A DNA stretch of 63,415 nucleotides, counting the filler, from Sluysia triapertura (lineage: Eukaryota): NCBI GenBank assembly GCA_046118255.1. It is 4 parts of 4 records of this genome, joined end to end, with 100 filler letters (N's around TTAATTAATTAA, not from the genome) between each part and the next. Parts side by side here need not be neighbours in the genome. Positions count along the whole stretch, not along the records: positions 27,439 to 51,930 come from JBJNIA010190718.1; 3 more parts are not named here. One strand, 5' to 3'. The notes beneath the pieces are model-generated. The model had not been told where the DNA came from. It saw only the letters and a list, made by a program, of their open reading frames with translations, and ran no database searches. This document shows positions 1,890-51,930 of this stretch, piece by piece (the stretch's first letter is position 1; each line of letters starts with the position of its first letter). Made by a program: the position numbers and the translations under genes.

Positions 1890-2005
1890 AGTAACTCGAC
1901 TTTGTGTGGAGGAACTCAGGGGCGATTAGATAATGAAAAGCAGATGAAATGTAAAATTTGCAAAACAATTATAAAGAAAGTACATATTCCATGATCCATG
2001 TATGG
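1890..2005 (+). mobile_element. Possible decayed BED zinc finger (hAT transposase N-terminus)
   Basis: Across frameshifts: FVWR...MKCKICKTIIKK / STYSMIH resembles the BED pattern VW..CK.C...ST..L..H. Confidence 0.3.
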
Positions 2006-3396: not shown

Positions 3397-3678
3397 TCAA
3401 TAATTCTCAGCCCACGGATTTTCTTCTAAGAATGTATTAACTACTTCTTTCATAACAACATTTGAGATCAATTGATCTTCTGTTAAAGATTGTCTAGTTA
3501 TAGGATCAAAATGTCCAACTCTATGTAAATGCTCAATAATTGCTTGACGATCATATGTTATACCACTAGGTGCAATAACTGGATCTCGCATAATTTCGAA
3601 ACTGATTCTTCCATATAAATAGTCAGGAATATCTCCATATCTTGTTGCACCTATGCTTGACTTGTTATAAGAATAAAC
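3397..3678 (-). CDS. STUB1: Terminal exon encoding a CHIP/STUB1-type U-box domain (94 codons including stop, phase 0)
   Basis: Acceptor tttag|G at 3678. Reads [93 protein letters not shown], closely matching the CHIP C-terminus ([40 protein letters not shown]). No TPR exons seen, so orthology to full-length STUB1 is not certain. Confidence 0.88.
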
Positions 3679-27438: not shown

Positions 27439-27810
27439 CGATCTTAGATATATTAAATTTAAATATCTATGTTTAATTTACAATTACTTTTACACAATAC
27501 ACTTTAACTAAATAATAATAGTTGAATGTGCGTGTGTATAGTGAAAAATACACAATTTCATTGTCTCGAATTAAATTACAATGTAAACCAAAATGTGATT
27601 TATTCAAAACGTCATACACTATAAAAAGTTTACAAAATGATTGTAATCGTTTTAGTAATAATAAAAAATATTTGATATTTAATAAAATATCAAAAAAGTT
27701 AATAAATTAAATTTTATCTATTTTCATAATATTGTAAAAATAATTTTATGATTAATTAAAAATTTTAAATTTTATAATTATGTAATTATTTCTAATATAT
27801 GACAAATTAC

Positions 27811-27892
27811 CTCGTGTTGATAATAAAAGAATATTTTTAATAAATAAAACTGTTATAAGTAATGCAAGAATTCTAATTTTTTCAATAATATT
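27811..27892 (-). CDS. Candidate exon of an unidentified gene (hydrophobic segment)
   Basis: tttcag acceptor, G|gtaatt donor; open in phase 0: NIIEKIRILALLITVLFIKNILLLSTR. Confidence 0.3.
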
Positions 27893-29249
27893 CTGAAAAT
27901 AGGAAATACCTTTAAATGTTTATAATCTTAGAAGTTAAAGAAAACAAAAATAGAACATAGTACAATTAATTAGCAAGGAAAAGCTGTGGATTGAGCATAA
28001 ACAACGTAGAACACAAGAATGTAATGTTAGTATAATAAATGCAAACCAACAAGGTGGATATAAATAAATTGACTACATTGAGTTATATTATAAAATGAAA
28101 TTAAATATAATATAGAGGAAATTAGTAATATAATCACAAAAGTAAAAATAAGTTTATATTTATATACTTAATTATAAAATACAATCGGCCAAATAGAGAA
28201 ACTAACTGCAGATTAAAATGAATACACAAAATGTCACTCCTGGGTTTCCGTAATAATAATAATAATGACAATATCATAATAATAGTTTGATTAACAGAAA
28301 AACAACAGCAATGATAATAATTAAATATTAATAATATTAATATTAATAATAATAAATTAAATAATTATTTAACATAATATTCATCTATTTTTAAATTTAC
28401 CATCCTTCAAAATTGTAAATCAAATCTAAAGTTCATTTAATTTAAATTATTTTAAATTAAAATTTAACTTATTATAATTATAATGCTTTTATCAACTTCA
28501 AATGAGATTTAATAGAGTTAATATAAATTCAAAATATAGTAACAAATAGTAACCAGTTTAAAAATGAAATAAAATAAATAATCGTTTTAAAATGAGATTC
28601 TGTAAAGAGAATGTAAAATCAAACTTTAAGAACATAAGATTCAATAAAAATCATTTTAATACGCAAGTTAAAATAATGTTAAACTGAGATTGTGTGTAAT
28701 GAAAAATTAGTAACATTATTCTCGGTTAAAATCAGCTTAAACTAAAGATTGAGCAGAATAGAGAAATAAATTATTCAGACAGAAAATTAGTATTACTACT
28801 TATTACTTGTATATATTTGTTAACTATTAATAATACCGAAGAATTTATTGAAGAAATTAAACTGAAGAAATTGAATTTATCCATACGCATTGCTGACGAC
28901 TGAACATTTATTACAAACTGAAATTAATTGAAAATTCCGATATTATATTGAATTATTGAAGAATGGAATAACAGTAAGTAATATTATATTTCGTCTGAAT
29001 AATAAAATAAAAATTTTTGATAGAATTTAAAGAATTAAAACTGTATATTTTTTGTTATCATTGCTTCAGTATATATCGAATAAATTTTAAATTGTTATAA
29101 TCAATAAATTTTAGTGTATTTTAGTTTCATTAATTTATTACAAGTTGAAGATAAAGTATCAAAAGGAAAGTAAAATTATAAATTGTATTAGTAAGAACTC
29201 AGACTTTTAATAGAACAAGATTTTATTTTACATCAGACTCAAAACTTAC

Positions 29250-29313
29250 TTTGCGTTTCCATTTCAGGTCACCGAAACGAGTATCCGATCTCACACTTCT
29301 AGACAAAATAAAT
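29250..29313 (-). CDS. Candidate exon of an unidentified gene
   Basis: tttag acceptor, gtaagt donor; FILSRSVRSDTRFGDLKWKRK. Ends in phase 0, compatible with 27811-27892. Confidence 0.3.
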
Positions 29314-32300
29314 CTAAAGCATAAATATTACCTATAAAGCAAAACGATAAAGAGTTTATACGATATAAGGTAAAATAATTGAAGAATAATAATTTATATA
29401 AGTGAAGATATTTAGACTATTGTCGAAGACTAAAAGTGCATATTAGTCAAAGTTAAGAATTCAAAAACATTGAAGAATAATAACATTTTGTAAACTTTAC
29501 ATTAACGAGTTTTAAATTTTACAGTCATAAAAGATCACAGTAAAAATTAGAATAAAGTGAGCATAGTGATAAAAAAAATTAGAATATTATTAAGAACAAG
29601 AATCCATAAAGAAACTTACATTGATTACAAACATATATAAACCTATTGATATAAGAAAGTGTTCACAGATATTCAATCTTTACAAAAAGTTACATAAATT
29701 TTTTAAATTGTACAATTATGAAGTAATAAATAATATTAATAATTATTATAATAAATCAGGCCATAGACACTGCGCGGAAATTATCATAGGTAAAACATAT
29801 CAATATGACCTAAGAATTTAATTGGCAAAATGAGAATAAAATGAACTGAATAAACTTGAAAAATCTTATATTAAGTTTAATTTTCATTTTGTTTCCATAA
29901 ACCTAAAATCTACTTAAAATATATTAATTGATTTCAGCGAATTAATTTTACTTTAAAATCTAAATAAATTTAAGAAAAATAAATAAAGGTGAAATAATTT
30001 AATTTGTAACATTCTTTATATTCATGTCATATAATTATGTCATATAATAATTATGTTATGTCATATTTGCGTTATATAATTATGACTTATACAATTAAGA
30101 ATATATAAATATAGCTAAAATTTATTGATAATATAGCTTCGAATTATTAATTTCCGATTAATTAAACAAATTTAATTCAGTACTTTGTTTTTGAAAGGTT
30201 ATATTCACACGTTATAAGTTGTCGATTGTAATCTTCGAACGCGCAATATAAATTTACTTTACTGATAGGTTTTAGTTTGTAAAAATAAGAAAACACATAT
30301 AAATACATAAAACTACTTTTATTTGTTACTAAACAAATTATTTATTTTAATTTGTAGTTTGTAATGGATTTTATTTATATAATTTTTCAAGGTCAATGTG
30401 TAATATTCTATGTCAATTAGACTTATTTTATTGCTTGTTTATTATGACTAATTATAACATCCATTTACATCAGTTGAATTAGTTTTTTAATTTTATTAAT
30501 TTTTTATTCAAAAAAATTAAAACTACGAAAAATAATAAGCATCTGATTCGTAAATGTCTTATAATTTTTCGTAAAACTTTAAGCTTGACATTTGGAAATT
30601 GTAAATCAAATATATGTAATACAAAGTTGTAAGACAAAAAATATGATTATATTGCTATAAAATACAGGAAAAACATGGAGTGCTGTTTTCTGTTTTATTT
30701 TTTTAATAAATCCATATTTATGAAAATAAATATTTGGTCTAACGAATAAAAGCATCCACTGAATTGAGAATACTTAGTTAAAACATTTTTTAAAAACATG
30801 AACGAATGTTTTAATCAGTTTTTATCCAAATCATATCTTACAAAAGTGCTAAAAATCAGAAACCTTTCACAATATTTTCCAATATGTAACAGTCGTATTG
30901 ATATGGAAATTCATCTTTCTCGAGTAAACAAAACATTTTTGAGATCTAAATACTGCAGATTCATCGTGGATAAATACAATCATTCTTTAAAAATAATTTA
31001 AAATTTAATTATTTTCAAATTTCAAAGTAATAATAGTTATCATTTATCGCTTAATTAATATTAGGTAATACTTATTAATCATCATAAAGTACATATTTGT
31101 AACATGCAACTAATGAATGAATAATTTCATAGTTTTACTAATAAATTCCAAAATGACGGTAAAGTGTTTAAAACAATACTTTTTAGATTTTGTTTTACAT
31201 AAAGCATTATAAGTACAATTTTATGTTAAATGTAGTACATACTTATTGTTTACTTTTATATATGTTCTACTATTTGAAGTATAATCTCGCTAAAAAATAT
31301 GGCCTCTTCAATGTTCGCGATGAATTAATTCGCAAATTGCTTTTAAATGAAATATGTATCTTATTACGTTTCACCAACCATAGCTACTATTTCGATTCTA
31401 TTAAATATATTGTAATTTAAAAAGAATTTTAATTTTTAAATTCTTTTTTAATTCTTTCGCTACCCGAGCTTCAGGGAAAAATCACCACCACAGCCACCAC
31501 TGCCCAAACGTTTTTTTATTTAAATATGATATCACTTGTCATTAGTTTTTGTGGGATGTATTTGTAACTAAGTGAAATTAATACTTATATGTAGGAATAA
31601 CATCCTGTAGCTATTTTATTCTTTTATAACATAACGATCTGGTACCAATAATTACTATAAACTAATAATGAACACTCATCACACATTTGTGACGCTCAGC
31701 TCGGGCAAGAAAATCGGGTTGTCACATATATATGACGCTGGTATAACATAAACAATAATATAATATAAAGCAATAAAAGAAATAAAATAATAAAAATTTA
31801 AATTATTTTTCAAATAATTACTTTTATTACATGTTCTTCATTTTTGTGAATAATTTAGTATTATTTGATTTAATTATATTTCATTAGATTTGATAAGTTT
31901 TCAAACGAGGAATTGAATTAAATGTGAAAATAGATGCTATGAATGCTGAGCAATTATATTTTGTTGTAGCCGTTATTTACAACTTTTTGTGTAAGAGGAA
32001 AAATTTATCTGGACCATAATTATTAATATCCTTATTTGTACGAAACCTACCTTTATCTCTTCGATAAATAAATGAATCAATAATAATATTAATATTTCCT
32101 CCTGCAGAAGTCTAGATTTCTTAGAGTTATCAGATCTGGGAAGAAATAAGTCTCAATATCTAAAACAAACTTTTATTATATTTACTCCGGTTTTATCATT
32201 TTCCTCACGAAGCACTACTTTTTGAAAGAGTCAATAATTTAGATATTTTAAAAAGTGTTACAATATTCTTAAAGAAATTTGATAATGTGATAAATATCGT

Positions 32301-33226
32301 TTAAGTTATGACTTGATATATTTTTCCTTATTTTTTTTAATTTTGTTACATCATAACTTTTACTTATGCTTGTAATTACATTCATTTTTCTATCCTTTCT
32401 CTTATTTAATTCATTATTCTTTCTTAAATGTCATTTTTTCAAATTAAGTCTATTATGAATAAAATCGATTTTTTGGCAATATTCAAAATTTGTTTTGCAG
32501 ATTTACATATTAAAATTAAATTTTTTGGTAATCCACTTTTCATTTAAAATCTATAATTTATGCATGTGTTCACAATGTATTTTTACTGAATATATTTATT
32601 AAAATAAATTTAACACCCGACCATAAAGTTCTTCGATATTTTATTTTGATATCACGTTTTGCGTATTGGTTTCAATTTTTTAGAATGCCCGAAATATGTT
32701 ATCTCAAAACAATTGTTATATTAATAATAAAGCATATTCCAGAAATAGGCTTAATTTATCATATGAAGATAGGAAGACATTGATGAAACTCATTCAATCA
32801 TAATCATATTATCTCTCTCAATCCTAAAATATTTCCATTCATTATTTCAAAAAGTGCCAAAAATACTTTTCATTGGATACTTCAGAAGATAAGTTCGAAA
32901 AATATGTATCTGATACTGATGATACGTATTTCAAAGTAATTAAATAAATAAAAGAATTTTTTGGATATTATTTATGCAAATAAAATTCATTTTTTCAAAC
33001 TATTTATTATGCATTTTGACATTTTTCTAACATATACTAAATTTAAAATTAAACAATTTATATTCAATTATCAGTCGAAACCGATTCGTCATATCACAAT
33101 GCACAATAAATTCTATCATTAAGTTTATTATTCTTAATCTAATATCAAAAATTAAAAAATTAGTAATAAAAAATAAATTTACATATGTAACAATATTAAA
33201 AATATTCATTGGCAAACCAAACTTAC

Positions 33227-33480
33227 CTTGACGTCTTTAAGTTCATTCTTAAAAAATGTTTTTGTATATAACCAAGCACGGAAGTCAAAATCGAGTAAAC
33301 TATTTTTTGGCATGGATTTGATTTTACAAATAATTGGAATACATTCAATTATACCGAGTTTTTTCGTTTTTACATCACATTGAATTGGAATGCTTGTAGT
33401 GCCTAATTTTTCATTATTGTTTGATTTTACATTATCCGTTGTATCAACCGATCTTTTTTGCCGTCCTTGGGATTTTATTT
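33227..33480 (-). CDS. Integrin alpha downstream exon (furin site + calf-2)
   Basis: tttcag acceptor, AAG|gtaagt donor, phase 1-0: IKSQGRQKRSVDTT...IQCDVKTKKLGIIECIPIICKIKSMPKNSLLDFDFRAWLYTKTFF. RQKR cleavage site and calf-2 C..C.I.C..R.WL..TF pattern. Confidence 0.85.
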
Positions 33481-34804
33481 CTGAAAATATTGTTTAATTT
33501 TGAATTATTGATTAACTTATTAATAGTTATTTACAATTATGAGTCAAAATTTTGTCATTGTTCGCATTTAAAAAGATTTTCTTTGTTAAAGTTTTTTAAT
33601 TTTTTCTTATCTTTAATTTTTAAAATCACCTTGTCATAAAACTGTCAGATCGAAACTTCTTTCATAAATGAAAGTTATTAAAAACTAAAGATATATAATA
33701 ATAATTACTATGTAAAGTATTAATATTAATAATATTGATTTCAAAAAATATTTTGAATTTATTTTAAAATTTTTAAATATTTGTTTGACTAAGAAATAAT
33801 TCAACTTAATTTGAAAGTGATATGTAACATTCGTAAGAAGACTAATAGTAATATATGTAATTAATTTATTTTTATTTTATTATTTTCAAGCCATAAGCTA
33901 ATAGTTTTTAAAGAAAAAGTAGTAGAGAACATTTCTTACGAACCATACATGTTTCGAATAGCAAAATATTAATATGCAATATAATTTGTGCCATAGAATA
34001 ATACTTAAATTCCAGAGTCTTCAGATATTTATAATATAATAGATTTTACCACTTATAAACCCGATATGATAAAAGCCTAGTTATAGGCTTACTAAAGTTC
34101 TGGATTTCAAGGTCTAAATACAATTTAGATAAGGTGGGGTTGGTACAAAACAATCCAATTAAAAACATTCTTATTATTTATATAATTAAACTAAAAGTTA
34201 ATTTAGAAAAAATATTGTACAAAAATAAGCCTTTTATGTTTATAAAACTAAATTTATTTTAATTCGAGCTAGATTAAGTTTAATAAGTTTAAAACCATTT
34301 AAATATACAAATACAATCAAATTGAAACAATATGTTACGAGTTTATTATTGGTACATAAACGATTAACTCTTGAACGAAAACAAAGATAATTATTGTATG
34401 ATTTTATATCAGTGATGAAAATTGATGAAAATCAAATATTAGAGTGATCGCGTTTACTTGCATTAGTTAATTTATTTCAGGAAAACTTAATATTCTTATA
34501 TTATTTATGTATGTTCTGAATTATTCAAATTGTCTTTAAAATAAGAATTATTATTTTAACAAATTTTAAAATTTCTTTAATCCACATATTTGCAAGTGAT
34601 CTAAGCCTACTAGATATCATAATTTAAAAACTTAATAAAAATGCAGTATAAGCATTTTAGAATATGCAAAATTCAAAATCTGTATCATGTAAATTTTATT
34701 TAAATTTATTAATAAAAAAGGTAAAGTTAAACGTTTACTTTGCATAATTAATTCAAATGCTTTTAATATAACATATATTAGAAAAAATATATGGTTATTC
34801 TGAC

Positions 34805-34805
<1 letters not shown>

Positions 34806-34856
<51 letters not shown>
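34806..34856. repeat. (TAA)n microsatellite
   Basis: Perfect run. Confidence 0.95.
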
Positions 34857-34858
<2 letters not shown>

Positions 34859-36554
34859 CATTTTTGTTTACTATATAACATATGCAATAAAAATGAAAAT
34901 ACACATCACAAGTAACTGCTTAAAAGCTCAAAAACAAATAATCAAAGAAAATAATCTATTAAACACTGAAAAAAGCATACAAAAGGTACGAAAGTAAATA
35001 TAAATGAAAACTAAAAATAAATTCTTCGTAATTTCTGCCAAATAAAACACTTATTGCATTATTAGGTTTCGTCTTCAGAATTAAAAAAATGTTTTTCTTT
35101 TAAATTAAGTACCAAAAATCTTAAAAATTTACTATTGAAAAATCAAAATTAATATTAAAATTTAATAGATGAACATTAATTTTAAAATATAAAATAAAAC
35201 ATTTTAAAAATAAAACCATAAAATATAATTAAAATATCACTGAAAGAAAACAATGTAAATTTAATAAAAAAAGATCTCTTTAGTAAATCTTTTTTCACAA
35301 TTACTCTGGATTGGATGCACGGTTATCTTTTAGGAATTTCTTGTTTCAAATAAATTTAAAAAATATAAAAATTCTTATTTTTCTTAGTATTCACTATTTG
35401 CTATTTTTATAAAATCGCACTTTTAAAAATAATCACATATAAATAAAATTATTCATATTTAATGTGAATAATTTTTAATACATATTTATAAAACTTCGAT
35501 ATTTATATAAACAAATATTGTTTAAAAATTCACTACAAATCATTATATTATATTAGACTACACTATTAAAATGAGTATTTAAATTAAAAAAAACAGGAAA
35601 AATAAATGATTAATATTTATTAATCGATTTATTTATATAAACACAGACACACACATACACGCATACAAATTATTAATGTTAAAAAAGAATGGCACAATTT
35701 TTATGTCTTATGTAATTGAAAGAAAAATAAGCCAAATAATGTACTTCGTCAAAAAATTATTAAATTCAAACTTGTCTATATATTTATTTTGTAAATTCAT
35801 TAAATTAGATAATTTTCACTTTAAGATTCGAAGCACGCAATATTACATTGACCTAATTTCAGATTAATTTATGATGGCAGTACTGTGGTAGAAAATAATT
35901 ATAAATATCATTCAATTTAATCAATATTGATATTTTAGATTAAATTTGTATTTCACAAATCATGTTTAATAGACAAAATTTATTTTATTTGTATGCCTAT
36001 TTTATATTATTGTCTATTACTTAGGTATTTTTAATTTTAATAAAACTCAATACACATGGTACTTCAAAAGTTTCTTTAATATATTGATTGATTCTAAACA
36101 CTAGAAAGTTCTCGTTTGAAATGTGATCTGGTCTAATTTATGATTCATATTTTTAAGGTAAGATTGCTATAACAAAAGCACCTATAATATTAATAAAAAT
36201 TTAGAGTTTTTTGCAACAGAAATCAAGTTTTCCTAACCATATATGTAGCCCAGAAATTCGTTTTAAACAAAGTATCCCTAGAAGTAGAAAGATTCAAAAA
36301 AAACTGTTTTAACTGTTTAGATATATAACAAAATAGATATTTGTCATTAATATTATAATAATTTTTTATTCTTAAATGAAATATTAAAGGCATTTTTGTA
36401 TCACTTCTTATATAAACCTTGAATAAAACTATTCCTATATTTTATGGTTGGAAAATATTTAAAATTAAAATATAAAATGTTTTTAAAAAACAAAATATCG
36501 ATTTACAAATAGTAACTTGTGTTAAATATAAATAAGAAACTTTCATTAAATTAC

Positions 36555-39357
36555 TTTTGGCTCGACTTGACAGTTTAACAAAATCCTGATGCGATTTTTT
36601 GGGTTTCACTGTGTCCACAATAATAAATTTGTCTGGATTAATAATAGAATAAGGTACGTGACATTTTCCTACAACTTCTCCTTGTCTTGTTATTTTTGGA
36701 GAAATATCTTCCCAGCTCGAATTATAAGCCAATCTAATTTTATCAAACAAATATAACAATATTTCTCCCTTTTCACTTGCATAGGGAATCTTAAAATTTA
36801 ATTTCATATCATTTAATTCCGGACCACGATTTTCGATCAAGAACTTGAATTTAATTTCCGGACCAAACTGTCGAATATTAATTCTATAATCAAATTCAGG
36901 TATTCGTAATGGTTGATCACGTTGATCGATAATAGCACCTCTGTCGCGATTATCAATTATTGTCAAATTTGGTCGAAAACTAATTGAATATTTAACAACA
37001 GCTTCATTATTCTTTATATTGGTATCGTCATTAATTCCCCAAATTTTAAAAGCTATATTAGTACTATTAAATAAATGTGTATCATTAATTGGACGATATA
37101 AAATATCAAAATCTACTAAAACATTGGAAATATCCATATCAGGTCGACTCATTCGGTTTTTAAAGATTATTTTAGCACTATGTAAATTGCGTGATAATTG
37201 TTTATTCCACAAGTCTGCATTACTGAATACATTATTAATAACAATGTCTTCTGAACTGATTGCTTGTAAATAAATTCTTGGTGTTATAGTGGGACCATGA
37301 TTAGATAGTGTAATTTGAATTCGTCTTTGATATATTGATTTATCACCATAATATATTGTAGAACCTTGTTTATCTGGTGATACTCGTAAAGACAGATCAG
37401 AATAGCAGCGAATTTTATTGTTAGGACATTTGAATTGTTTCAATTTGATTGCAGTACTACATCCAATCCAATTTACTCGTACGTGATTACTAGATTTAAA
37501 TTTGTAACATTGATTTGGTTGGTGAATTTTACATGGTGATACACCACGAATGGCAATTTTAAATGGATTAGATTTCATATCCCAATTAAGTACATCTCGC
37601 TGTACTTGAACACGCATTTTCAATTGATTATTATTTTTAATTATTAAATCATTATTTTGATTAAGTGGCATAATTTTAACTCGATCATCGTTTTCTAGTT
37701 GAATTTCGTTCACTTTATTACCATAATCAAGAGCTACTTGATAATAATAATTCGATACGGTGAAATTCGAATCAAATTTATTCGACTGTAATTTTAAGTC
37801 AACAAATATTTCGAATTCTTCTCCCTTGAGTAATATTCGAGATTTCTTGGTCCAGCTGAAATGACATTTTACATTCACAGACCGAGGCATCATAAATAAA
37901 TGAGCTTTGTCCGAATTTAATGAAGTTACCATAAAATCTGGAAATCCATTCGAATCTATATCAAAACCACGTGATAAACCAACTCCGAAACCCCAGGAAT
38001 TAGTCAAACTGTTAGGTGAATTTAGTCTTGGAAACACCTGAATAGGATGTGGATTGATTCGACAATCTTTGGTTGTAGTAAAAACAAATATTCTACTTTT
38101 TCGATTATTATGTGCAAATTTTGTTAACAACGGCGCTGTTACAATTACATCTTCAGTACCATCTCCATTAACATCATCTACACGGGCTACAGACCATCCA
38201 AAATAATTATAATCTTTAGTATTTAACTCGTTATTGAATCTTACGTCATATCCGCCTAACTTAAATATTCCATGACCTTTGCAAGCCAAGTATATAGCTC
38301 CCACATTCGGTTCTCCATTATCAAACATATAGGGAGATCCTATAACAACACCAGTCAAATTATCATCTAACTTAACAGTATCCAAACTTGTTCCAAATCC
38401 TGCGTATCTTTTCATTATATCATCTTTTGGTGGTGTAATTTTTTCTCGATTTTCTGCCGCTTTCAACAAATCTACAAAAGCTACTTCAACATTTCCTAAA
38501 GGTGATGCAATTAGCAACTCATCATTTTTCGAAATCGCAACAGAATATCCATAATTGAAACTATCGTCATTTATTTTAGCAGCACTAGCTATCTGACTGG
38601 TTTCAGCTTGTTGTAAATATTTTACTGAACTATTTAATGGTAAACCAAATAATACATTAATACCATTTTTACTACTAGATACATCCAATGAATATCCACC
38701 GATACATTTTTCATAACTTTTACAAATTTCAAAAACACGTTTCTCAATTCTAGTATTTATTTTTATTTGATCATCAAGCAAAACTAAAAAGCATCTTCCA
38801 GATGGAAATAGATATGGTGATTTTTTATTTACCCATAATGGATCACAATAAACGAAAGCTCCAGAATTATTTTTATATTCCACACCACGAACAACAGCAC
38901 CAAGATACTTTGAATCAGTTGCACTTTCTCGACTACTTTCAATAGTTTCACATTTTAAATCTAATTCTCCATTCACTTTATTATTAACACAAACCACTAC
39001 TATTCCGGATTTTTTTGTATAAGCACCTCCTATTCGATAATTATCGTTTACTTGAGATCCACCGAACATAACCAACGATTTATTCGAAGACGATAAATGA
39101 ACACCTGACACTGAAACCCAATCATATTTCAACCAATCTTTTACTAATTTCGGTAACAAATGTTGTGGAACATATTCGAATGGTTCATCGAATAAGTCTT
39201 CATTTTTATATTTAGGCAACCAAATTCGAGGAACATCACTATCAACATCATCATCATTAGTACTACTGGTATTATTAACTTTATTAATATTTTTCGAATT
39301 CAATGCTTCAAATAAAAAAGCAAACCAAAATAAAATTATGTATCGTTCGATATTCAT
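36555..39357 (-). CDS. Integrin alpha subunit A, giant first exon (signal peptide, FG-GAP beta-propeller, thigh, calf-1, part of calf-2)
   Basis: 971-aa ORF with signal peptide, FG-GAP repeats (YFGWSVA, GSP, TAP), Ca-binding loops DVNGDGTED and DIDSNGFPD, genu C..C.SDL and no I-domain. Probable phase-1 donor A|gtaatt at 36555; the ORF tail to 36442 looks like intron read-through. Confidence 0.93.
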
Positions 39358-41095
39358 ATTGCATTAGGATATATATATCAAAAGTTATAAAATAAATAAC
39401 TATAAAACTTTATTTATAAAATCATCAAAATGAAATAAATTTGTTTAATATGTGACATATTTTTTGGGAAAGTGTGTGATTTAATTAATGTGTGCATAAT
39501 TGTAAATATTCGATCATGAGCAATGAAAAATAAAGTAATTAATCCATTATACAGTGTTACTGCAAACTGATCTTGTAACACATAAATTGTATTTAATAAA
39601 ATGTATGAGAAAATTATTACTAACTTAAATTAAATTGTTAATTTAAATTTAGATTATTTAAAATCGTAACTTAATTATTTATTTAATCATTATTTCGTTT
39701 TACCTTAATAAATATGAATAATTGTTGCTTCAAATATTAATCTTTAAATTAGGAATTTATTTAAAATAACCAATAATTTTTATCAAATATTTTAATTAAA
39801 TCGATTTGTAATTATCAAGATATATTTAAAATCATTTGAAATAAAAATTCGAAGATGACAATAATACCGTACATAATACACAAATGACATTTATAAATTT
39901 GAATAAACAAGTTTTAATATATAGCACATTAATTACATTGAAGAGTTTAATTTACTATCATGTAAAAAAATCAGCCAATAAAATCTTGTTGATTTTAAAT
40001 TGTTATAGTTCAAGTTTAATATTTTATTGTTCTACAATTCAAATAAATGATTTAAAAAATTTAAAATGAAATGAAATACAGTAAATTGAATTAATCTATG
40101 TAGTACTAATTACAGTTTCAATTTATATTTATATATAATGGAAATTGAATGATTATTGAAACTGTTTCCGGTAGAATCACATTTATTAAAATTATAACTT
40201 ATAAATTTGTTAAATAATTAAGTATTGATTGACATTATAATATATTAATAAGGTTAATAATTTCGTTACTAAAATAATATTGGAAATTTAACTATTAAAA
40301 ACTTATAAATACATTATTTGTATTGAACTGATAAATTTGTTTTATTGTGGTCTTTTATCTAAAAGTTAACGAATACATTATTAGCCACATAAGATATTTC
40401 TTAAGTGTTCTTCAATACAATACCAGCTATAAGTAGTCTAAGTGTTTTCAATCGCTATAAAAAAAGATTTTGTAAATTGTCACTTCAAAATTAAATCTAC
40501 TAAAATCAGTATCAGTCAAGAACACAATACAAATTTTATACATAAAGTTAAACTAATTTTTGAAATGAGAAATACACACACACACACACACCAAATTTTC
40601 ATATTCAATTTTTTATTTATTATATTTGTTCGTGGATCTCAAAATGCAAAAATTGGTGGAAAAAGGAAATAATATGGAATGTCTTCGTGTACTCATCTTA
40701 TCTTTAATTGTGAATTTCAACTAGATTATAATTTAAACTGCCTAATTATTTTTGAAATTTTATCATTAAATGCATATTAAATATTCTTTATTTGAATTCT
40801 AATCCAGAAAATGTTACATTAAATAAACAAATTACTTGTTACTATACAAATCCATGTACATTTTCTCTGATCATAATCTATAATTACACTTGCAATAAAA
40901 TCAAGAATTTAGGCGGTCAACCACATGAAATAAAAGTGCATTTCAAACCAGCTAGCACATGATATGAAATCACTGGGAAATTATGAAATATTTATGATAT
41001 TGTTCTTTCCATTTCAAAAATAAAAGAAATGATGCATTCTAAGAGATTTTGAACACGTATTTCATAATAGATACAATTGCTGCATAAATTATATG

Positions 41096-41098
<3 letters not shown>

Positions 41099-41156
<58 letters not shown>

Positions 41157-41157
41157 G
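41099..41157. repeat. (TTA)n microsatellite
   Basis: Perfect run. Confidence 0.95.
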
Positions 41158-41274
41158 CGGTTGTCAAAAAATAAAGAGATTGCAGCTTGAAGATAAAGGG
41201 ATCAATATTTTAAAAAGTTTTACAAAAAATTTATACTTTTATTAATTTATTAATTTAATTTGAATTGTTTGAAA

Positions 41275-41475
41275 ATCATTTTTAATTAATATCTTTCCTT
41301 ATGATGTTTGCATAGGAGCGGGTATCACATATAATAAAGCACAATCATGAAATGTGTCAATGTTAAGAACACCAAGACAGTGTGAAATATGTCAACGTAG
41401 ATAACGTGAAATCATCAGTTTTAATTAATTTTCTTTATTATGAAGTTAAATTGTTATGTATTATAATGAGCATAC
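41275..41475 (+). repeat. Dispersed ~200-bp repeat, copy 2
   Basis: Colinear similarity to 12775-12975. Confidence 0.85.
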
Positions 41476-42320
41476 ATAATAAAATTATATATCAAATTAA
41501 TGCTCTTGAAGATGTTATTGAAATTGACGTGTGCCGTATCGTTAACGTGTTGCGCATTGTATCAAAAGTTATTATTGAATACAAGTTTTTTATTTGATTA
41601 GATTTATATTCAATTTAAGTTATTGTATTGTTGTATTGATAAGTATTATAACTATGACCTTAAATTTTAATTTATTATGTTTGTCACAAAACAAATTGCT
41701 AGATAATATTAAGACGGAAATTTGACCGAAATTCATGTTCAAATTTGAGTAATAAAATTTGTCGGCATATAACCGACTCTAAGAAGTAAGCATGTCTTGT
41801 CCACATGCACAATAATTAAGTCTAATTATCCAAACACTACACAAAGAACCACATTTTTCGATCATTTAACACAAAATAGAAAAGCAAATTATTATGACAG
41901 TTGAGACTTTTGCTGTAAGAAGGCTGATTCAATACAGTAGTGGCAAACACTGATTGAAACTCACAATTATTTAGAAATTGGACTAAATTTTATTATTTGT
42001 GGTTAGTTGAGTCTTTAGTTTTTATTGTTTATTTATTGTATTCTGGCTAGTAACATTTAGATTGAGCATTATAATTGAGTTTAATTTTATTGAATAGTAA
42101 TTGTCGTAAAAGACTGAGTGATATTGACTTAATCATTATTTAATTTTATTGTGATATATTGTGATATAATTATAATATATTGAGATTGAGACTCATTCAA
42201 TTGTCTTTTATAATTTAAAGAATATTAAAAAGATAAAAACACAACATTATTATTGTTGGTATACAGTATTAAGGTGCCACTTGGTATGGTTGACTATTAT
42301 AATCTAAAACTTGTTAGATA

Positions 42321-42393
42321 GGGCTGATAGCTCAGTGAGGAAAGCATCGAACTGAGCAGCGAGAGGTCCCGGGTTCGATTCCTGGTCAGTCTA
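42321..42393 (+). tRNA. tRNA-derived (Ala-like) pseudo-tRNA / SINE head
   Basis: Acceptor stem GGGCTGA/TCAGTCT, A-box TAGCTCAGTGAGG, T-arm CCGGG-TTCGATT-CCTGG, then TTTT. The anticodon stem is disrupted, so it is unlikely to be a functional tRNA. Confidence 0.65.
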
Positions 42394-42408
42394 TTTTATG
42401 AAGTCTTA

Positions 42409-42409
<1 letters not shown>

Positions 42410-42473
<64 letters not shown>
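42410..42473. repeat. (TTA)n microsatellite
   Basis: Perfect run between the tRNA-like head and the LINE fragment. Confidence 0.95.
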
Positions 42474-42474
<1 letters not shown>

Positions 42475-42484
42475 GTGAGAAGCA

Positions 42485-42700
42485 CATTCCTTTGAGATTA
42501 TAAAGTATTATATCATGATCTATGTATCAAAAGTAGCAACATACTGAACAATAGCATTAAAACATATTATAATTGAAACTATTTAAAATATAATTTATTC
42601 TGAAGACATCTGAGTTTATTGAATGATAGACTTTTACAATGCTTGTGAATCTGCTTTTTCAAACAATTTTGATAAAATTATTATACTTTATATGTGTCTA
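42485..42700 (-). mobile_element. L2/CR1-type LINE RT fragment
   Basis: ILSKLFEK and ATFDT/DHDIILYNLK (cf. AFDTVDH.ILL.RL), frameshifted. Confidence 0.5.
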
Positions 42701-42733
42701 TAATTATTTAAAAATAATGGATTACCAAACCTT

Positions 42734-42816
42734 CTGAGCTATCAGCTCCGTCTAACAATTTTATTTTATTATAGTCAATATTACCATCGCGGCACTTTAG
42801 GCCTTTTATCCCAACA
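42734..42816 (-). repeat. Inverted second copy of the tRNA-headed repeat's 5' part
   Basis: Reverse complement tgttgggata...gtgcc...ttgactataata...ttgttagacggagctgatagctcag aligns to 42254-42335. Confidence 0.75.
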
Positions 42817-43799
42817 ACATGTTGTCTATTGTTCATTTGGAACCCCGGCAGGTACAAATGTGTGCTCATAATTTTAATAGAATTAAAAGGCTTTAAGTCT
42901 GATGTAAAGATTTTGAAAATGATAAAAGACCCCAGTCTATTTTAAATTTTACAAATGAAATAAAAAGCCTAAAGCTTACTTTAAAGTCAATAACAGCTCT
43001 TAAGTGCCACATATTCAACTTTATAAGATTCTCTCGTACTTTTTGTCGGCATTAATTTTGACTTTAAAATTATCACTGTTTTCTTATTATTAAATATTAT
43101 TCTTATTTATTAAGCATTATTTTTATTTATACGTATTATGTTTCTTTCTCAGAAAAGAAGGTTGGTATTCATCGTTATATGTATCGTGCGTTTTTAGAAT
43201 TTGCCTGTAAATATTAAGAAAATAATTCAAATAACACAAATAATAATTCTAGTTTTTTACCTTTGAATGTGGAATTATTTAAGACATGATTTATCGATAA
43301 TGCAGACTCAAAATTGTCTGATCATAGTAATAATGATAATAGTAAACTATCTTCTATCGTAGTGAATAAATTACCACAATCTTCTCCACATCACCGCATT
43401 CGACCATACAAAACAATTGCGCATTGCAAACATAATAACCTAGCAAGAATCATTGCATTATCTGAATAAACACAATTTTCTATGGGCACAGAGTCAGCTT
43501 CTAATTTATTTCCCAACAATAATATCTTCGACAAAACTAAATCTGTATCAGTATAAGCAGGACAACAACCACAACATTCATCATTATAGCAAAGTGCAAG
43601 TATTTCTGGATAAAGCAGCTTTCTAACTAGTTCTAGGAATGAAGCTGTATGAAAAACATGACTTAAAGAATGCAAATTCCACTAGTTAGTGATGCTTGTT
43701 TACTTCGTACATAAAGGTAAAGAATGAAAGTTATGTATGATCAAGCGCAACATTTAATATACAATAGCAATCAAAGGATATTATTACATAGTACATAAT

Positions 43800-44032
43800 A
43801 TGTATCATAGACCTTCACGAAAGAAAATAGTATTTTTGAAAGAATCGCCAAAGTTCTGTTCATCAGATCACAAAATCGTTTATTTAGGTCTCTTTAATCA
43901 TGATTCATGTTCCTGGCATTTCTGTAATCGTGGACATCTCATTTACGAAATGATAGTAGAAGAAAACTACTATTGTAAAATTTTCTGATGTTATGCAGAA
44001 GAAAACTCGAAAAGTATTATAAAATGTGCTAG
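43800..44032 (+). pseudogene. Decayed Wnt ligand C-terminal region
   Basis: RPSRKKIVFLKESPKFCSSDHKIVYLG...DSCSWHFCNRGHLIYEMIVEENYYCKIF*CY...CRRKLEKYY.C matches Wnt P..DLVYL..SP.FC..D....LG / .C..LCC.RG......V.E.C.CKF.WCC. The conserved Trp codon is TGA, several Cys are Tyr, and there are deletions. Confidence 0.78.
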
Positions 44033-47000
44033 TTTGTCAAGTACACATTAAGCCTACAACTATTAGGACTTATACCACTACCATAATTACTCTAGTTCGC
44101 ATTAAACCACATACTTCGAAAACCATTTCACTATATTATTGAATTGTAAAGTAAAATTATGCAAAAAGAAACATTTTAATATTATGTCTTTATATTTTTA
44201 TTACTTATTTGATTATCAAAATTTCATCAAAGATCTATTTTATGTTGAATTTAATCACCTTTGTACTTATGATATACAATCATTATTATAATAATTAATA
44301 TTTTATTATTATTTTTCATTGTTATTTTCAAAATTGTTTTTTGTTTACATTATGTTACAAAAATAAAAATTGTAAATGTGATGCTTAAAATTAGATTCAA
44401 TTTTAAATAAGTTAAAAGAGAAAACCGTTTAATGATATTTTAGGATGTAGTAAGGTTAGTTGCGATAAAGAGAGAATCTGTAGAAGTTCTGCCGGTTTTT
44501 GGAGCAGGAAAATCATGGGATATGAAGTTAAGGAATAAACAAAGTCGCATTGTTGCAATGCGTGATTCTGTAAGTATTAAAGAAGTGTTGATTTTGGCCG
44601 GTTTCCATTTCAATATATCGTTACGTAATTTATGACGATTTATTAGTGACAACAATGTTGGACAGTATTGAGTTGCGGTGAATTTAGAAAATCTACTAAC
44701 GCAAGCTATTCTGTACGCAACGGTAGCAGGTTGGCCGCTGAAGTTTTGGATGGAAAATTTATTGAATTTTAATTTGGCGTTTTATTATGTGTTTTTTATT
44801 TGGGTTGGTCATCTCCTCCGAGGTAATTAGTACACCTTAAAAGTTTAACATAAGTTATGTATCATCTAAATTTGGTTTAAAATTAAATTGAAAGTAAACA
44901 GCTTATATAATCGGTGGTGAGTCTAAAATCCAAATTTTCTTTAATAACTTGATTACTAATAAAACATCTTCGACATAAACTTTAATAATATTTTAATTTT
45001 AAGTTTTATTTTATAATCATGAATTAAAAGAAAATGCAAGACATTTATAAATACACTTTGACAATACCATCGACCTATTGCACAAAATCAGCTTTGTGTG
45101 TAAATTTAGACTAAATGATTGTGCAATATGTACAGATAATTTATCAATTTAATTATGGAACGTTGATATTACCACATTCGCAATATCAAATGAAAAACTA
45201 TTATTCAGCCTGCTAAGATATTATGAGGACTAATTAAAATAATAATAAAATTGATAATTAGATCGATTTTCTGACTATGTAAATAACATCGTACATAATT
45301 TTTATCTACGATTTTTTCTTTTACATAATTTTATGAACAACAAAGCCTTAAAAATAAAACATTTATAAATAATCTACCATACAACAATAATAAATGGATC
45401 TTAAAATGTTAAATTATGAATTTGAAATATTTTACATGCATGTCATGGATGAATAAGTAAAATATAAAAAAACTATATATTATTATTTTTATCATTTTAT
45501 CAGTATTATTACTGGTCTCGATATGAATAAAAATTTAACATTGTGACTGACATTTGGACTGCGTTTAGACTTCTAAAACGTTTAGAATCGAATTACGAAG
45601 TTACTGGTTTTGATATTGCACAATTCAAGTACTTAATGAAAGATTGAATTACCATGTTAAACGATATTGAAAATTATCAAATTTTAGTTGAAGCGTATGA
45701 TAGAATGGAACTGAGGGAACGTAAACGTCAAGTGTATCGTACATTCAACTAAATAGTCTAAACAATTTGATTGCCAATCTCTAATTGATACCAATATGAA
45801 AACTAAGCCAATGCGTCAAATGAAAATTATTGAAATGAATTTTATGAATTTTAGTTACAATTTTAGTGAAATAAATCAAGAAGCTATTGATAATCGAAAG
45901 CTAAAAGCTTTAGAGAACTTTTGCGATAATAACAAAAAAATACTAGAATTAATCTATGAAGCTATCTAGTGTCACACAACTTTCAAAGATGTCACAGATC
46001 AAAAAGTCTCACGTGAATAACAAATTTTGCCGAATATAGTTTCAACGCTGTTTGTACGTGTATAATGTTGTAGCTCATTATTAACTTATAATTTTACCAT
46101 TCACAATTCACTAAAATATTTACAATATCCAAGAACTTAATAGGCCACAATTATATATTGCTTTTACCGTATATATATCGTGCCATACAATACAAATATT
46201 ATCCTCATAAACGAGTTGGTATTTGAAAAATTTTTAGTCAGTTCTTCTTGGATTTCAGCAAAGATTATGGAATTCAAATCCTAGCAAAATTTATGAATGT
46301 AGTAATGGATCTTGTGATTATAGAAGTAAAAAGAAAAATCGTAATTGTGATTATAATAGTCGTATGACAATAAAAGACAGTTTTGCAGTATTTCAATCTT
46401 GTATTCACCTGATTCTTTTACCTTGGCATTAATTCAATACAAACCTAAACATATGGACAATTATTTTATTATTCATTATGTAGATTTTGACAATAGATAT
46501 TATGAAGATATAAGCACTTATAAAAACCACGTTTATGATTTAGTATTTTATGTAAAATACAATGAAGATTATATACATTATATTAAGTTTAAAAATGCTT
46601 TGAAACTTTATCTAGGAAAAATTTAAAAACAATTTTTCGAGTGGCTATTAGAGTTAATGCGATTCAAGATTTGAGATAAGTCGCAGAAATGACACGATTG
46701 GAATTGTCTTATAAAAAGGTAGATTGTGTAAGAATTGTATACAATTTCAATGAGACAAATTGAAAATACATTGTATATGTTTTCGTTAAATCAATAAAGT
46801 TAAAACTTAGTATGTCATTTTATGCAAGTTTATTCAAAACCTCTTAACATTTACGTAAATCTATCAAATGCAGTAAAATCCGAATATCATTCTTGAAATA
46901 TCACATGCGAAATTTAACGAAAATTCTGATAAAGTTCTGATCAACTTATTGGTCAAATCATAGTTGAAAATTAATTAAAAGATTAAGAAACTAATCAACG

Positions 47001-48542
47001 TTTAATGTACATTGTTGCACAACTTCTGATGAGTAATGATCAGGTTCACTTTAATTGTTACTACATATCTCAAAGTAAAGTACAAGATTTGTATTTGTAC
47101 AAAAATACAAAATTTTCAGGTTGTGTAGTTTCATATATTTTGCTGCTAGGACGTTTTGAATTTGGCAACTGTAACGAATTTAGATCTCTAGTTATTTATT
47201 ATCTCAATGTATTTTTATTCACATATGATACCAAATCTTCTGTTATAGGAACAAACAATAGAAGACCCAACGTGTTAGTGTGTGTTATTCATTTTATCAT
47301 TTTTATATAGTTAAAATATATTGTAAAACTCATTTTGTGTTTATAAATCTTTGTTTTTATCTTAAAATGCAGCATCTGACAGTTTTTTTGTAACTTTAAA
47401 CTCAAAATTTTTAAATCATTGAAAAAGCTCTTAACTAAGGCCATAGGAATTGAAAGAAACTCCAAAGAAAATCCAATGTAATTAAAAATCCATATTATTT
47501 CTTCTAGATTGAAGTTATGTTGGAAAATTTGATGCAAAATGTATTTTATTTAAAAATATAAGACGAAAATGAAATTGGGATATTAAATTGATTTAAAACA
47601 AAGTTTTATTGATAAAGTAACTCATTTTTTAAATAATTGCTAAGACGCATATGTGTATTGCCCGTCTCGAAAGGGTTAAAAAATAATCTGTTGGTCAATT
47701 AAACCCTTCCAAAACTATCCCGATACGTTCACGGGCTGTCGCTGTTCAATTAAAATGTCTATCCCATTAGGTTCACAGGCTTCCAATGTTGATCAACAAT
47801 AATTATCACGATACACCCACGCGTGTCATGTTATGTATACGTCTTTTGTTTATAAGTAATTATTTTATAAAAAATTGTTTCTATTATCCAATTATAAGTT
47901 AATAAATTAAAATATGTAAAAATAGGTACACATGGATTAATATGATAGCATTTAATTTTTAAGAATCAATTAAAGCATAAAGTTATTAAAGTCAATTAAC
48001 TCAAAAAATTGTTACAATTTTTTTGAATTCATTTTATTTTTAGGAAAACGAAAATACAAAAGTATAATGAAAACTTAAGTTATAAAAATTTTTAGCATTA
48101 TATGTATCATAATATTTTAGTTTTTAATAACATCGTGAAAATTAATTTTGTAAAAATATAATTTAAAATTATAAAAACATCTTAATAATCTTAATTATAA
48201 ATAAAATAAATCTAAAATATCTTAGTAATTGTGAAACAGTATCTCAGTAAATGTAAACATCTTAAAATACCTGAAATCGAAAATTGAAAAAAAAGAATGG
48301 AGACGCAGCACATTTAATTAGCAAGCCGAAAAGGTTGCAGTATCACTCTGATTTTATGAAAATATAATGAAAACGAAGAAATAAATATTAACATAAATTA
48401 TTAAATGAATGGATATGAAAGTGTAAATGGCCAAACAAATATTAAAACAGTGAAGACATTTAAAATTTAACATTTTTAAATATGATATTTAAATGCATTT
48501 AAAATTTGTCTATTATTCTAGCCTGAATATATAAATTCTAAC

Positions 48543-51030
48543 CTGAATGCTTATGTGTTTCTTTTACTCGATAATGATAAGGATTGATAGCATAAGATGG
48601 CACAGAACAATTAGATACTATTATTCCAGACCGTGTAATAACAGGTAAAGAATTAACCCATTTTTCGGATACTGTTTGTCTAATATGATCTACTAAATAT
48701 AAAATAATCTGATCTTTCGAAATGCCAAGCTTGAAAGGTAACTTTAAAGTCAATGTTACGTTATTTAACTCCATACCATTATTCTTTATCGAATACTTGA
48801 ATAAAACTTCAGTACCTAACTCATGTATTTGAACTGCTGAGTTATCCCTCAATATAGGTGGTTTTGGACGTCTATCTAAGATTGTGTCACGTAATTCTTT
48901 TACTGATATTATCAAATCTGGTTTAATCTTCACAATAAAATTCACGAATTGTGAATTATCAGTTAAATTCTTCTCTTCATTATTACTCGATATTTCGAAT
49001 ATTACAAATTCATTTTGGGGAACTGATTCTGTTTTAGGTGGATTATAACGAACATTTACAACAATATGATAAATTTTTTTGGTTTTGTAAGGATCTAACT
49101 CAGATATGGGTTCTAATTCTTCTTTTAAAAGTATGGACTGATTCTTAGATTTATCAAAATAGTGTAAACAATGTTTTCCACAATTTACAGAATCTATTTG
49201 AATATTTTCAGATAATTTCATAGATATAAAAGTTCTTTTAACTACATCTGGGCCATTGTTATAAATCATTAATTTCAACTTCCGATTATAACTTTGAAAA
49301 TCACCGTAACTTATTACTAGATCTTGTTCATCATAATTAACCGTCAATTTCATTTCACTTATACATGTACGATCAAAACATTGGTTTTGTAAAATTGAGA
49401 CTGTATCACTAGGCATGTTGCACACAATTTCTTTGCGATTTGATTTGTAACAAGTATCTGGATCTGTAATTTTACATTTTCGAATTAGACGGGTTTTTAT
49501 TTTGAATGGAGTATATTTGAAATTCATATCATACATGTTTTGTAAAACATTTAATTCAATACGAAAATTTCCTGAACGTGTTTCAATTTTGTTAAATGTA
49601 AAACGTTTAGGTTCTTTTTCGTACATGTAATCGACAGAAACTTGTAATTCATAATTATTAATATCAAAAATTTTCATTAGTTTTAAGAGTAATACTAATT
49701 TATCATTCGATACAGATTCTTTCTCTAATTTACAAATTATTATTTCCGTGGTTGGTAACATAAAAAGATGCGGCATTACTGCATTTAATGAAGTGACAAA
49801 AAAATCAATGTGGCCATTAATATCTAAATCAAAACCTCGTGATACCCCAATTCCAAAACCCCATTTAGTCAAAATATTATTTTTAATTCGTGGAAATACT
49901 TGTATAGGTTTTGGATTTATACGACAATCTTTTGTAACTGTGAAAACAAAAATTCTGCCAACATCTGAACTCTCTGATAATAATAATGGTGCCGATACAA
50001 CAAATTCATCATTTCCATCATTATTGATATCACCTAATTTTGCAACTGACCAACCAAAATAATGATAATCTCGTTTAATTTCTATTTTAACATCATCGCC
50101 ACTAAGTTTAAATGCAGGATAACCTTCACAAGCTAAAAAGACAGCACCAATATTTGGCCTTGAGTTGCTAACCATATAAGGTGCTCCAATAATTATACCA
50201 TTTACATTACTTACTTTCAAAATATCCAATGTAGTTCCAAAACCTCCATAAGCACTTGAATTAGTACTTTCCAAAATATTCATTTTTACATGATTTCGTG
50301 AAACAAAAGCATATTTGCTACCAGTAATAGGACTTGAAACAATTATGTTATTATCATCACCATATGCAACACTGTACCCATAATGAAAATCATTAGATTG
50401 ATATGGTGATCTAGTTTCAACTTGTAATGACGGATTAAAACTTAAAATAACAGTTGTATTGTAAAATGGTCCTCCAACTATTAACTTTAATCTATTACCA
50501 ACCTCTTTCATGTCGAGAGAAAAGCCACCATTACAAGATTTTAAACAAACTTGTTCATCACGTAATTTACCTTGCGGTTCTGATAGAATTTTAAGAAAAC
50601 ATTTAGAAAATTTAGTGTCACAAAATGCGCCGACGGCTTTATCTTGAAAAAGACTAGTACGAACTGATTCTCCTAGGTAACTGTAAGAATTGTTTTTGAT
50701 AATACTACACATTAAATTAAGGTCTATTTTACCTTCATTTTTACAAAAAATTATATATCCCTTTTGATTTCTATAAACGGCATTTATATCATTTACTGTA
50801 TTTGGAATTTTAGCCCCAAATAATACATACGATGTACTGTCTAAAGAAGTACCGGAAACAGATAGCCAATCCATAGAATTAGTTTGGCCATAATTAAAAT
50901 TATCAATTTGATAATAATCAAACAGTTCTTCGAAAGAATCTGAATTTCGTAAATCTGGTTTCCAAACTAATGATGAATATAAAGAAAATTGATATTGAAT
51001 GAATAAAATAGTAATATAAAAAGGAAACAT
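48543..51030 (-). CDS. Integrin alpha subunit B, giant first exon (paralogue of A)
   Basis: Likely start MFPFYITILF at 51030; FG-GAP repeats, DINNDGNDE, DLDINGHID, and CRINP.PIQVFPR shared with A. Phase-1 donor G|gttaga at 48543. Confidence 0.92.
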
Positions 51031-51853
51031 TATAAATACAAAGATTTCAACGGAGGGAATTCGAAAAATTGTAAAAACAAATGCAATTACTGCATTCTGA
51101 TTGGTTTTTATTATTGTAAATATTACTAATTCTGACTCATTCAATTTGTACAATATTATTCACTTTTGATTGGTGAAAATTATGCATCATATTCTTAAAA
51201 TCAATAAATGAATGATTCAATAAAAATTTAGTTAATTAATTTTGAACCATAAATAAACATAAATGTATTTATAATAATAATGAATAGATTTATAATTATA
51301 AATTATAAAAATCCTATAATTTATATGATTTAATATGATTTGTATTTCTGAATTAATGTAATACATTTTAATGTGCCAAATTGAGTACGCATTTTAATCA
51401 ATATTTAGCTAATAATTGTGAATTAATGATATTCTATCTTAATTTAAATAAATTTATTTATATTTACACTTACAAGAAAGATGAAGAAGTTATTGTATTT
51501 ATGTGTTCAGGAATATTTAGAAAATCAGTATGAGATCTAACGAAAATGTAATAAAAATAGTTTATCTTTTAATATTTAATTAGAATTACTTAAATTGTAA
51601 TTAAGAGGCTGTATCTGTTGCTATTTGGGGGTGCTGTGGTTTTATATCCTAACTTACTTCCAGCATCAAAATAGATTTATAGAGTCCGTCTACAATATAC
51701 AGCTTACGAATGGTGTAGTTGTAGATACGCGAGCTAATATATCTGTAACATAATATTCATTAAAATTATTTAAATTATCATTTACTAGTAAAATTATTTA
51801 TTAAAAATTATCCATAAAATACTATAATATTACTAAAATTATTAACCCAAAAT

Positions 51854-51860
<7 letters not shown>

Positions 51861-51930
<70 letters not shown>
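51861..51930. repeat. (TTA)n microsatellite ending a contig
   Basis: Perfect run into the spacer. Confidence 0.95.

Follow-up and report, generated by a model that had tools for sequence, protein, structure and literature searches.

The window considered here is a stretch of 63,415 nucleotides from Sluysia triapertura (assembly GCA_046118255.1), and the subject of this report is an integrin-alpha locus in one of its pieces, positions 27439-51930 (24.5 kb, from record JBJNIA010190718.1), where two giant exons may be joined to one common downstream exon. Both strands of this piece were covered in the exon searches. It contains no N and is extremely AT-rich, with a GC content of 0.18-0.23 in non-coding stretches against 0.28-0.32 over two large open frames. 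Long open reading frames (ORFs) are found only on the minus strand, at 39357-36442 (971 codons, copy A) and at 51153-48538 (copy B, 871 codons counted from a TTG at 51153, the first ATG being at 51030); the third-longest stop-to-stop frame of the piece has 113 codons. A preliminary description of this DNA had placed here two tandem exons of the same strand (51030-48543 and 39357-36555), each with its own ATG, signal peptide and near-complete ectodomain, and all these coordinates hold. The features of the locus are the following.

48543-51030, minus strand: giant exon B, with ATG, signal peptide, beta-propeller, thigh, calf-1 and the first part of calf-2; 829 codons plus 1 base
48536-48545, minus strand: splice donor of exon B, phase 1, TCAG/GTTAGA, final exon base 48543
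39358-48542, minus strand: interval between the exon B donor and the exon A ATG, 9.2 kb; no integrin-like exon found with the constant-exon peptide, 14 flatworm tails and a hidden Markov model (HMM), within their sensitivity
36555-39357, minus strand: giant exon A, with ATG, signal peptide and integrin-alpha ectodomain to mid calf-2; 934 codons plus 1 base
36548-36557, minus strand: splice donor of exon A, phase 1, AAAA/GTAATT, final exon base 36555
33481-36554, minus strand: intron of 3.07 kb separating exon A from the constant exon, boundaries read from the sequence
33227-33480, minus strand: first constant exon, phase 1 in and phase 0 out, with the RQKR site, a light-chain start with three cysteines, and calf-2 strands ending WLYTKTFFKNELKDVK
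33452-33463, minus strand: RQKR codons, predicted by translation as a furin-type site of cleavage between heavy and light chain
27439-33226, minus strand: region 3' of the constant exon, 5.8 kb; remaining calf-2, transmembrane (TM) segment and GFFRR tail not detectable

Identity of the two giant exons

Exon B opens with the ATG at 51030, where a hydrophobic signal peptide, MFPFYITILFIQYQFSLYSS, begins. Exon A opens with the ATG at 39357 (N-terminal start MNIERYIILFWFAFLFEALNS), and its frame stays open to 36445, past the donor. An in-frame stop is located at 39366-39364, two codons 5' of the exon A ATG, and no AG is present between this stop and the ATG; exon A is therefore a first coding exon and not an internal one. 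A single fused gene containing both B and A was also considered and is ruled out by the same stop and by the lack of an acceptor between it and the ATG of A. The acceptor-like sequence ttttatag is found at 39397-39404, 45 nucleotides 5' of the exon A ATG, and could be a spliced-leader or 5'-UTR acceptor.

Both exons encode integrin-alpha ectodomains. FG-GAP repeats were recognized by Pfam in exon A (1.3e-8) and exon B (1.6e-5), and the calf-2 model Integrin_A_Ig_3 was matched at its positions 22-74, i.e. its first third, in A and B and at positions 110-184 in the constant exon. The best sequence matches of both exons in the PDB are the headpieces of alpha5, alphaIIb and alphaV. Calcium-binding loops of the DxDxDG type are present in the propeller, as DVNGDGTED and DIDSNGFPD in A and as DINNDGNDE and DLDINGHID in B. 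In the first of the two B loops, an N stands in place of the invariant G. An AlphaFold model of exon B, obtained from an alignment of 18 rows (predicted local distance difference test, pLDDT, 70.6), aligned with the complete ectodomains of alphaV, alpha5 and alphaIIb over 800-870 columns (E = 4e-27). The seven-blade FG-GAP propeller, the leg of thigh, calf-1 and calf-2, and the RQKR/S cleavage site are those of the cleaved integrin alphas without an I domain. The two giant exons are 32% identical to each other over ~890 columns (E = 1e-133).

Splice sites and reading frames

The constant exon begins after the acceptor ttttcag/AA at 33480, which is preceded by caatattttcag. Its first bases from 33480 are AA ATA AAA TCC CAA GGA CGG CAA AAA AGA TCG, its frame reads (K/E)-IKSQGRQKRSVD...DVK, and it ends with GAC GTC AAG/gtaagt, a consensus donor, after 33227. 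It is the segment with the highest coding potential on the minus strand outside A and B. The donors of both giant exons are in phase 1, as is the acceptor at 33480, and both joins are in frame: A followed by AA gives K in the first (...RAK-K-IKSQGRQKR), and G followed by AA gives E in the second (...HKHS-E-IKSQGRQKR). The phase-1 GT donors, the single phase-1 exon 33480-33227 and the two in-frame joins, as previously proposed, were thus all read from the sequence. That both giant exons share 33480-33227 as first constant exon is a reading with about as much in its favour as against it.

The exon A donor belongs to the class A[AG]/GTAA[GT]T, of which there are 10 sites on the minus strand. Sites of the type MAG/GTNAG, with a frequency of 8e-5 per nucleotide on both strands, have just two representatives anywhere on the minus strand of the piece, the exon B donor and the constant exon donor. 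The exon B donor has the right phase, lies at the homologous spot and is of a rare type, and its quality is therefore not attributable to chance. Such a donor would not persist had splicing ceased long ago.

The same intron is found in related genes. The giant ORF in the contig of P0121 ends with GGC AGC G/GTAAGT, the giant ORF in the contig of P0129 ends with TCA A/GTGAGT, and in Hymenolepis diminuta (CABIJS010000011.1; 12964 and 22156) the exon ending TAT TCA A/GTAGGT is followed by ttttag/AA CCA directly before RRRR/SVE. All three relatives have the intron in phase 1 and before the furin site, 10-26 residues past the C..VP/VNP motif. This common position and phase in three relatives places the exon B donor at an ancestral intron. 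No constant or TM exon was found within 5 kb 3' of the giant exon in the P0129 contig.

Relatives of the two copies

The closest relative in an exhaustive search of representative database sequences, P0121 (873 aa), is 40% identical to A and 32% identical to B. Of the later matches, every one with a named source is an integrin alpha of a cestode or trematode, which makes the organism a flatworm or something close to one. A maximum-likelihood tree has A and B as sisters (support 84/81), and these form with P0121 and P0123 a clade (100/100) apart from the two sampled neodermatan families, to which exon B is 18-24% identical. As further candidates, database proteins of Schistosoma and Spirometra that come in pairs, through neighbouring accessions or membership of one cluster, were inspected; they turned out to be ordinary isoforms or fragments and not alternative first exons.

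Integrin-alpha families specific to platyhelminths have been described (Beckmann et al. 2012, PMC3531407); exon structure is not given in that paper. Like A and B, the flatworm integrin alphas have the C..VP..NP motif, the furin site, the GWLW..TFF...DVK block and very large exons, with, in H. diminuta, a phase-1 intron before the furin site. The H. diminuta gene is a single complete unit whose head is spread over two large exons (432 and 440 residues) and two small ones, and its one last exon, reached across a 9.2 kb intron, runs from the furin site to the stop. In contrast, the head is here contained in one exon, of which there are two copies, and the tail is divided once more after DVK.

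Constraint on exon B

At the base composition of exon B, the probability of a random stop codon is 0.086, and 829 open codons would arise by chance with P = 1e-32; the other two frames of the exon contain 77 and 104 stops. The preservation of 829 open codons at 32% identity to exon A therefore indicates long purifying selection on exon B. Of 41 columns that are invariant in 17 other family sequences, exon B keeps 34 (exon A, 34 of 34), and among columns conserved at 90% or more it keeps 76% (exon A, 94%). Retention of family-conserved residues amounts to 64-83% in exon B versus 80-100% in exon A, and in exon B it exceeds the overall identity to the family (18-33%).

At residues 137-144 of exon B (~50600-50640), CDTKF-SKC stands where the 17 other aligned family members all have the CDPLW...P.GRC loop in invariant or almost invariant form. 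The only public sequencing run in which exon B is found, run X1, was examined over 45031-51030. At 48691, 48694 and 49257 it has C at full depth where the window has T; two of these differences in exon B are synonymous and one is conservative (N592D), a number too small for a test. From 48431 to 49830 the depth of X1 is roughly double the depth of the flanks, which fits a stretch common to both haplotypes between heterozygous flanks.

Search for further constant, transmembrane and tail exons

When the whole piece was searched by tblastn with the constant-exon peptide, only the exon itself was recovered (3e-55; next best E = 0.57), and no second copy appeared in 39358-48542. From 14 flatworm integrin alphas, the last 230-250 residues were also used as tblastn queries. 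All 14 tails matched 33520-33224 (E from 5e-8 to 2e-3, 23-41% identity), and elsewhere in the piece none gave a match with E < 0.01, the best being 0.032. An HMM built from the 14 tails and run against the six-frame pieces of at least 8 residues recognized only 33493-33209 (E = 7.5e-11). Its next best match, at 51601-51750 (E = 0.47), is on the plus strand and was dismissed as chance. Since queries as distant as 23-41% identity find the constant exon, a copy private to B and diverged by ~30% should be visible in 39358-48542. The 9.2 kb between the giant exons, described beforehand as free of gaps and of a matching exon, indeed contain no N and are negative by tblastn and HMM, and a private calf-2/TM/GFFKR exon set for B, which the preliminary description had set against its own proposal, was not found there with the 14 tails, the HMM or the motif. 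Nor was an integrin-like exon found inside the intron 33481-36554 by tblastn with the 14 tails or by the tail HMM.

The exon 33480-33227 had been treated as the whole constant region, and in this respect the description has to be corrected: it is only the first constant exon, and no TM/GFFKR exon was detected in 27439-33226. The conserved PLWPIIVG...CGFFRRR block left no trace in 27439-51930 by motif search, tblastn or HMM positions 109-247. Matches to GFF[KR]R in the piece occur in stop-ridden contexts and were rejected as chance. The consensus donor at 33227, taken with the lack of a TM or tail match, places the remaining calf-2, the TM helix and the tail below 27439.

These searches bear on the possibility that A and B are two separate complete genes, the 3' exons of B being too diverged, too split, or lost by assembly error in 39358-48542. 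Integrin-alpha paralogues usually take the form of tandem duplicates of whole genes, as in Drosophila alphaPS3-5, introns are long here (3 kb and more than 5.8 kb), and the TM exon of A itself went likewise undetected in the piece. However, the 14 tails and the HMM readily see the constant exon at 23-41% identity and nothing else, the PLWPIIVG...GFFRR block has no match, there is no N, and contigs assembled from the k-mers of X1 tile 45504-51030 with small gaps in a high-copy repeat and without rearrangement outside it. We regard two complete genes as very unlikely.

A coding-potential scan trained on A and B pointed, besides the constant exon, mainly to GC-richer DNA in any frame, and a Pfam search of these other ORFs gave no match. 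This concerns a further alternative, in which the B donor would be joined to a non-homologous acceptor, either the ttttatag located 45 nucleotides before the ATG of A or an unrecognized exon in the 9.2 kb, giving a novel C-terminus. The B donor looks functional and acceptor-like sites are abundant in AT-rich DNA; moreover, behind the ttttatag (~39404-39397) the phase-1 frame is open for ~30 mostly hydrophobic codons (ORF 39409-39311). Yet hydrophobic ORFs are the default in AT-rich sequence, neither a coding-potential nor a homology signal was obtained, and such a protein would have an incomplete calf-2 and an unpaired Cys808. A novel C-terminus of this kind is in our judgement improbable.

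Compatibility of the heads with the light chain

The sharing of the constant exon by both heads can also be considered from the cysteines. In cleaved integrin alphas, a cysteine just before the cleavage loop forms the disulfide between heavy and light chain. Exon A encodes 15 cysteines, exon B 17 and the constant exon 3, and the last cysteine of each giant exon is in the C.VP motif. Each head has an odd number of cysteines and therefore, given the known heavy-light disulfide, needs a light chain with an odd number. The unpaired C.VP cysteine of each heavy chain would pair with the spare cysteine of the constant exon.

Because furin cleavage leaves heavy and light chains as separate polypeptides, residues 700-829 of B and the part of the constant exon following RQKR were modelled as two chains. 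The complex of the B calf-2 half with the constant-exon light chain scored 0.61, and the best of three controls 0.07. A score of 0.61 is reached by 51 of 78 solved complexes and by 2 of 108 mismatched pairs. At least 71% of the contacts agreed between runs, the pLDDT of the partner was at least 54, and the neighbours of B Cys808 and of constant-exon Cys51 were among the contacts with the lowest error. The model speaks for structural compatibility only, as close relatives of the true partner pass too.

Possible alternative first exons on a common constant region

The arrangement suggests an integrin-alpha locus of the clustered protocadherin/UGT1A type, in which alternative giant first exons (two seen, possibly more upstream) would be spliced onto a common furin site, light chain, TM helix and tail; belief and doubt are for us evenly matched here. 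The exons, their phases, their homology and the single acceptor exon are observed; that both donors are used, that each giant exon has a promoter to itself and that more constant exons follow downstream is inferred. The simplest origin would be an old tandem duplication of a segment that comprised the promoter and exon 1 and was broken, at its downstream end, within intron 1, so that the upstream copy B would have been competent for splicing from the outset. Each giant exon probably has its own promoter. A transcript starting at B would run through A and, as A lacks an upstream acceptor, A would be removed within an intron of 15.06 kb when the B donor is joined to 33480. A transcript starting at A would use the same acceptor, 33480, across 3.07 kb. 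The last part of calf-2 would then come from exons located outside the piece, and so would the TM helix and the GFFRR tail. The choice of promoter would in this way set one of two heads, 32% identical to each other, on a common light chain and tail.

Several observations weigh against such a locus. A TAG stop lies one codon beyond the exon B donor, and an unspliced mRNA would yield a neatly truncated protein. Exon B is the most diverged of the family set and has the longest branch in the tree (terminal branch 1.87, versus 0.95 for A), and it has lost seven columns on which the 17 other sequences all agree, the CDPLW...GRC loop among them; this divergence and these losses fit relaxed constraint as well as a new function. 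The TM and tail exons were not found in the piece, which leaves the constant region partly documented, and the complex model does not discriminate between a light chain that is shared and a private one that was lost. No motif common to the regions upstream of A and B rose above background. Finally, run X1 has a word depth of ~20-50 on exon B and its flank alike, and one of its contigs, of 386 nucleotides, spans 48203-48588, straight through the exon B donor. This even depth and the contigs running through the donor show the run to be DNA, and it is silent on splicing.

Some of these points would also be expected if B were an orphaned partial duplicate, i.e. either a gene for a truncated secreted ectodomain ending ...HKHSG followed by the stop, or a copy that lost its 3' exons too recently for stops to have appeared. 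The stop one codon past the donor agrees with this explanation, but the protein would be cut in mid calf-2, leaving half a beta-sandwich and Cys808 unpaired. The failure to find a private 3' exon and the high-copy repeat 300 bp past the donor, which indicates a remodelled interval, agree with it as well; an unselected donor would be expected, yet the donor of B ranks among the top two donor-type sites of its strand and has the ancestral position and phase. B again has the longest branch in the tree and retains family-conserved residues least, although with 829 open codons at 32% identity any loss of function would be very recent, and the X1 differences in the exon are two synonymous changes and one conservative one (too few to test). 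An orphaned B appears to us rather unlikely. If B were an orphan, the locus would be an ordinary partial tandem duplication.

Comparison with known systems

Returning to the variable-first-exon reading, the genomic prerequisites of the design put forward in the preliminary description are all present, namely tandem exons, starts of their own, one common phase and one compatible downstream exon; the remaining constant region is not contained in the piece. As in the alpha and gamma protocadherin clusters and in UGT1A, the locus has huge, equally oriented tandem first exons, each of which brings its own start codon and signal peptide and encodes the whole recognition part; it further has a single donor phase, one constant set downstream, and internal variable exons without acceptors. 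It differs from them in that two variable exons are visible, the piece stopping 0.9 kb upstream of B, and in that no conserved promoter element was found. The split is also located differently, within the folded calf-2 and just before the furin site, so that the variable part would correspond to the heavy chain and the constant part to the light chain.

Known sources of integrin diversity are separate alpha genes and small alternative exons. Local duplication contributes to it in the form of whole genes, as in Drosophila alphaPS3/4/5, and of single internal exons, as in ITGA6 and ITGA7 with the mutually exclusive X1/X2 exons for a small propeller segment. Compared with these independent genes and this small swap, ~90% of the ectodomain would change here. 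No description of a variable/constant exon design for integrins was found in the literature searched. If the reading is correct, one locus would exchange ~90% of the ectodomain by the choice of first exon while light chain, TM helix and tail remain constant, which would be a new route to integrin diversity. Adhesion specificity would be switched with the signalling end unchanged, and the splice junction coincides with the boundary between heavy and light chain. An adhesion receptor would thereby provide another example, independent of the first, of the protocadherin/UGT1A logic. Gene prediction will render the upstream exon of such a locus as a truncated gene, and designs of this kind may therefore be under-counted in flatworm and other poorly annotated genomes.

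Other features of the piece

The remaining elements are located mainly between the two giant exons.

47431-48230 (approximate): high-copy dispersed repeat, ~300 bp 3' of the exon B donor, with X1 word depth of 250-3800 against ~20-45 around it and many contig joints and loose ends
42307-42480, plus strand: tRNA-Phe(GAA)-like element with an (ATT)n tail, found by ARAGORN (Rfam tRNA, 35.8 bits)

The high-copy repeat and the tRNA-like element indicate that the interval was remodelled by mobile DNA. The element at 42307-42480 looks more like a tRNA-derived short interspersed element than like a working tRNA gene. At 43290-44800, a GC-richer block (0.26-0.28) contains ORFs of 60-113 codons on both strands; these had no Pfam match and no Rfam match at the gathering score, and the block could be a transposon relic or a non-coding element. 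Further (ATT)n or (TAA)n tracts are present at the edge of the piece (51860-51930) and, inside it, at 41085-41160 and 34805-34860.

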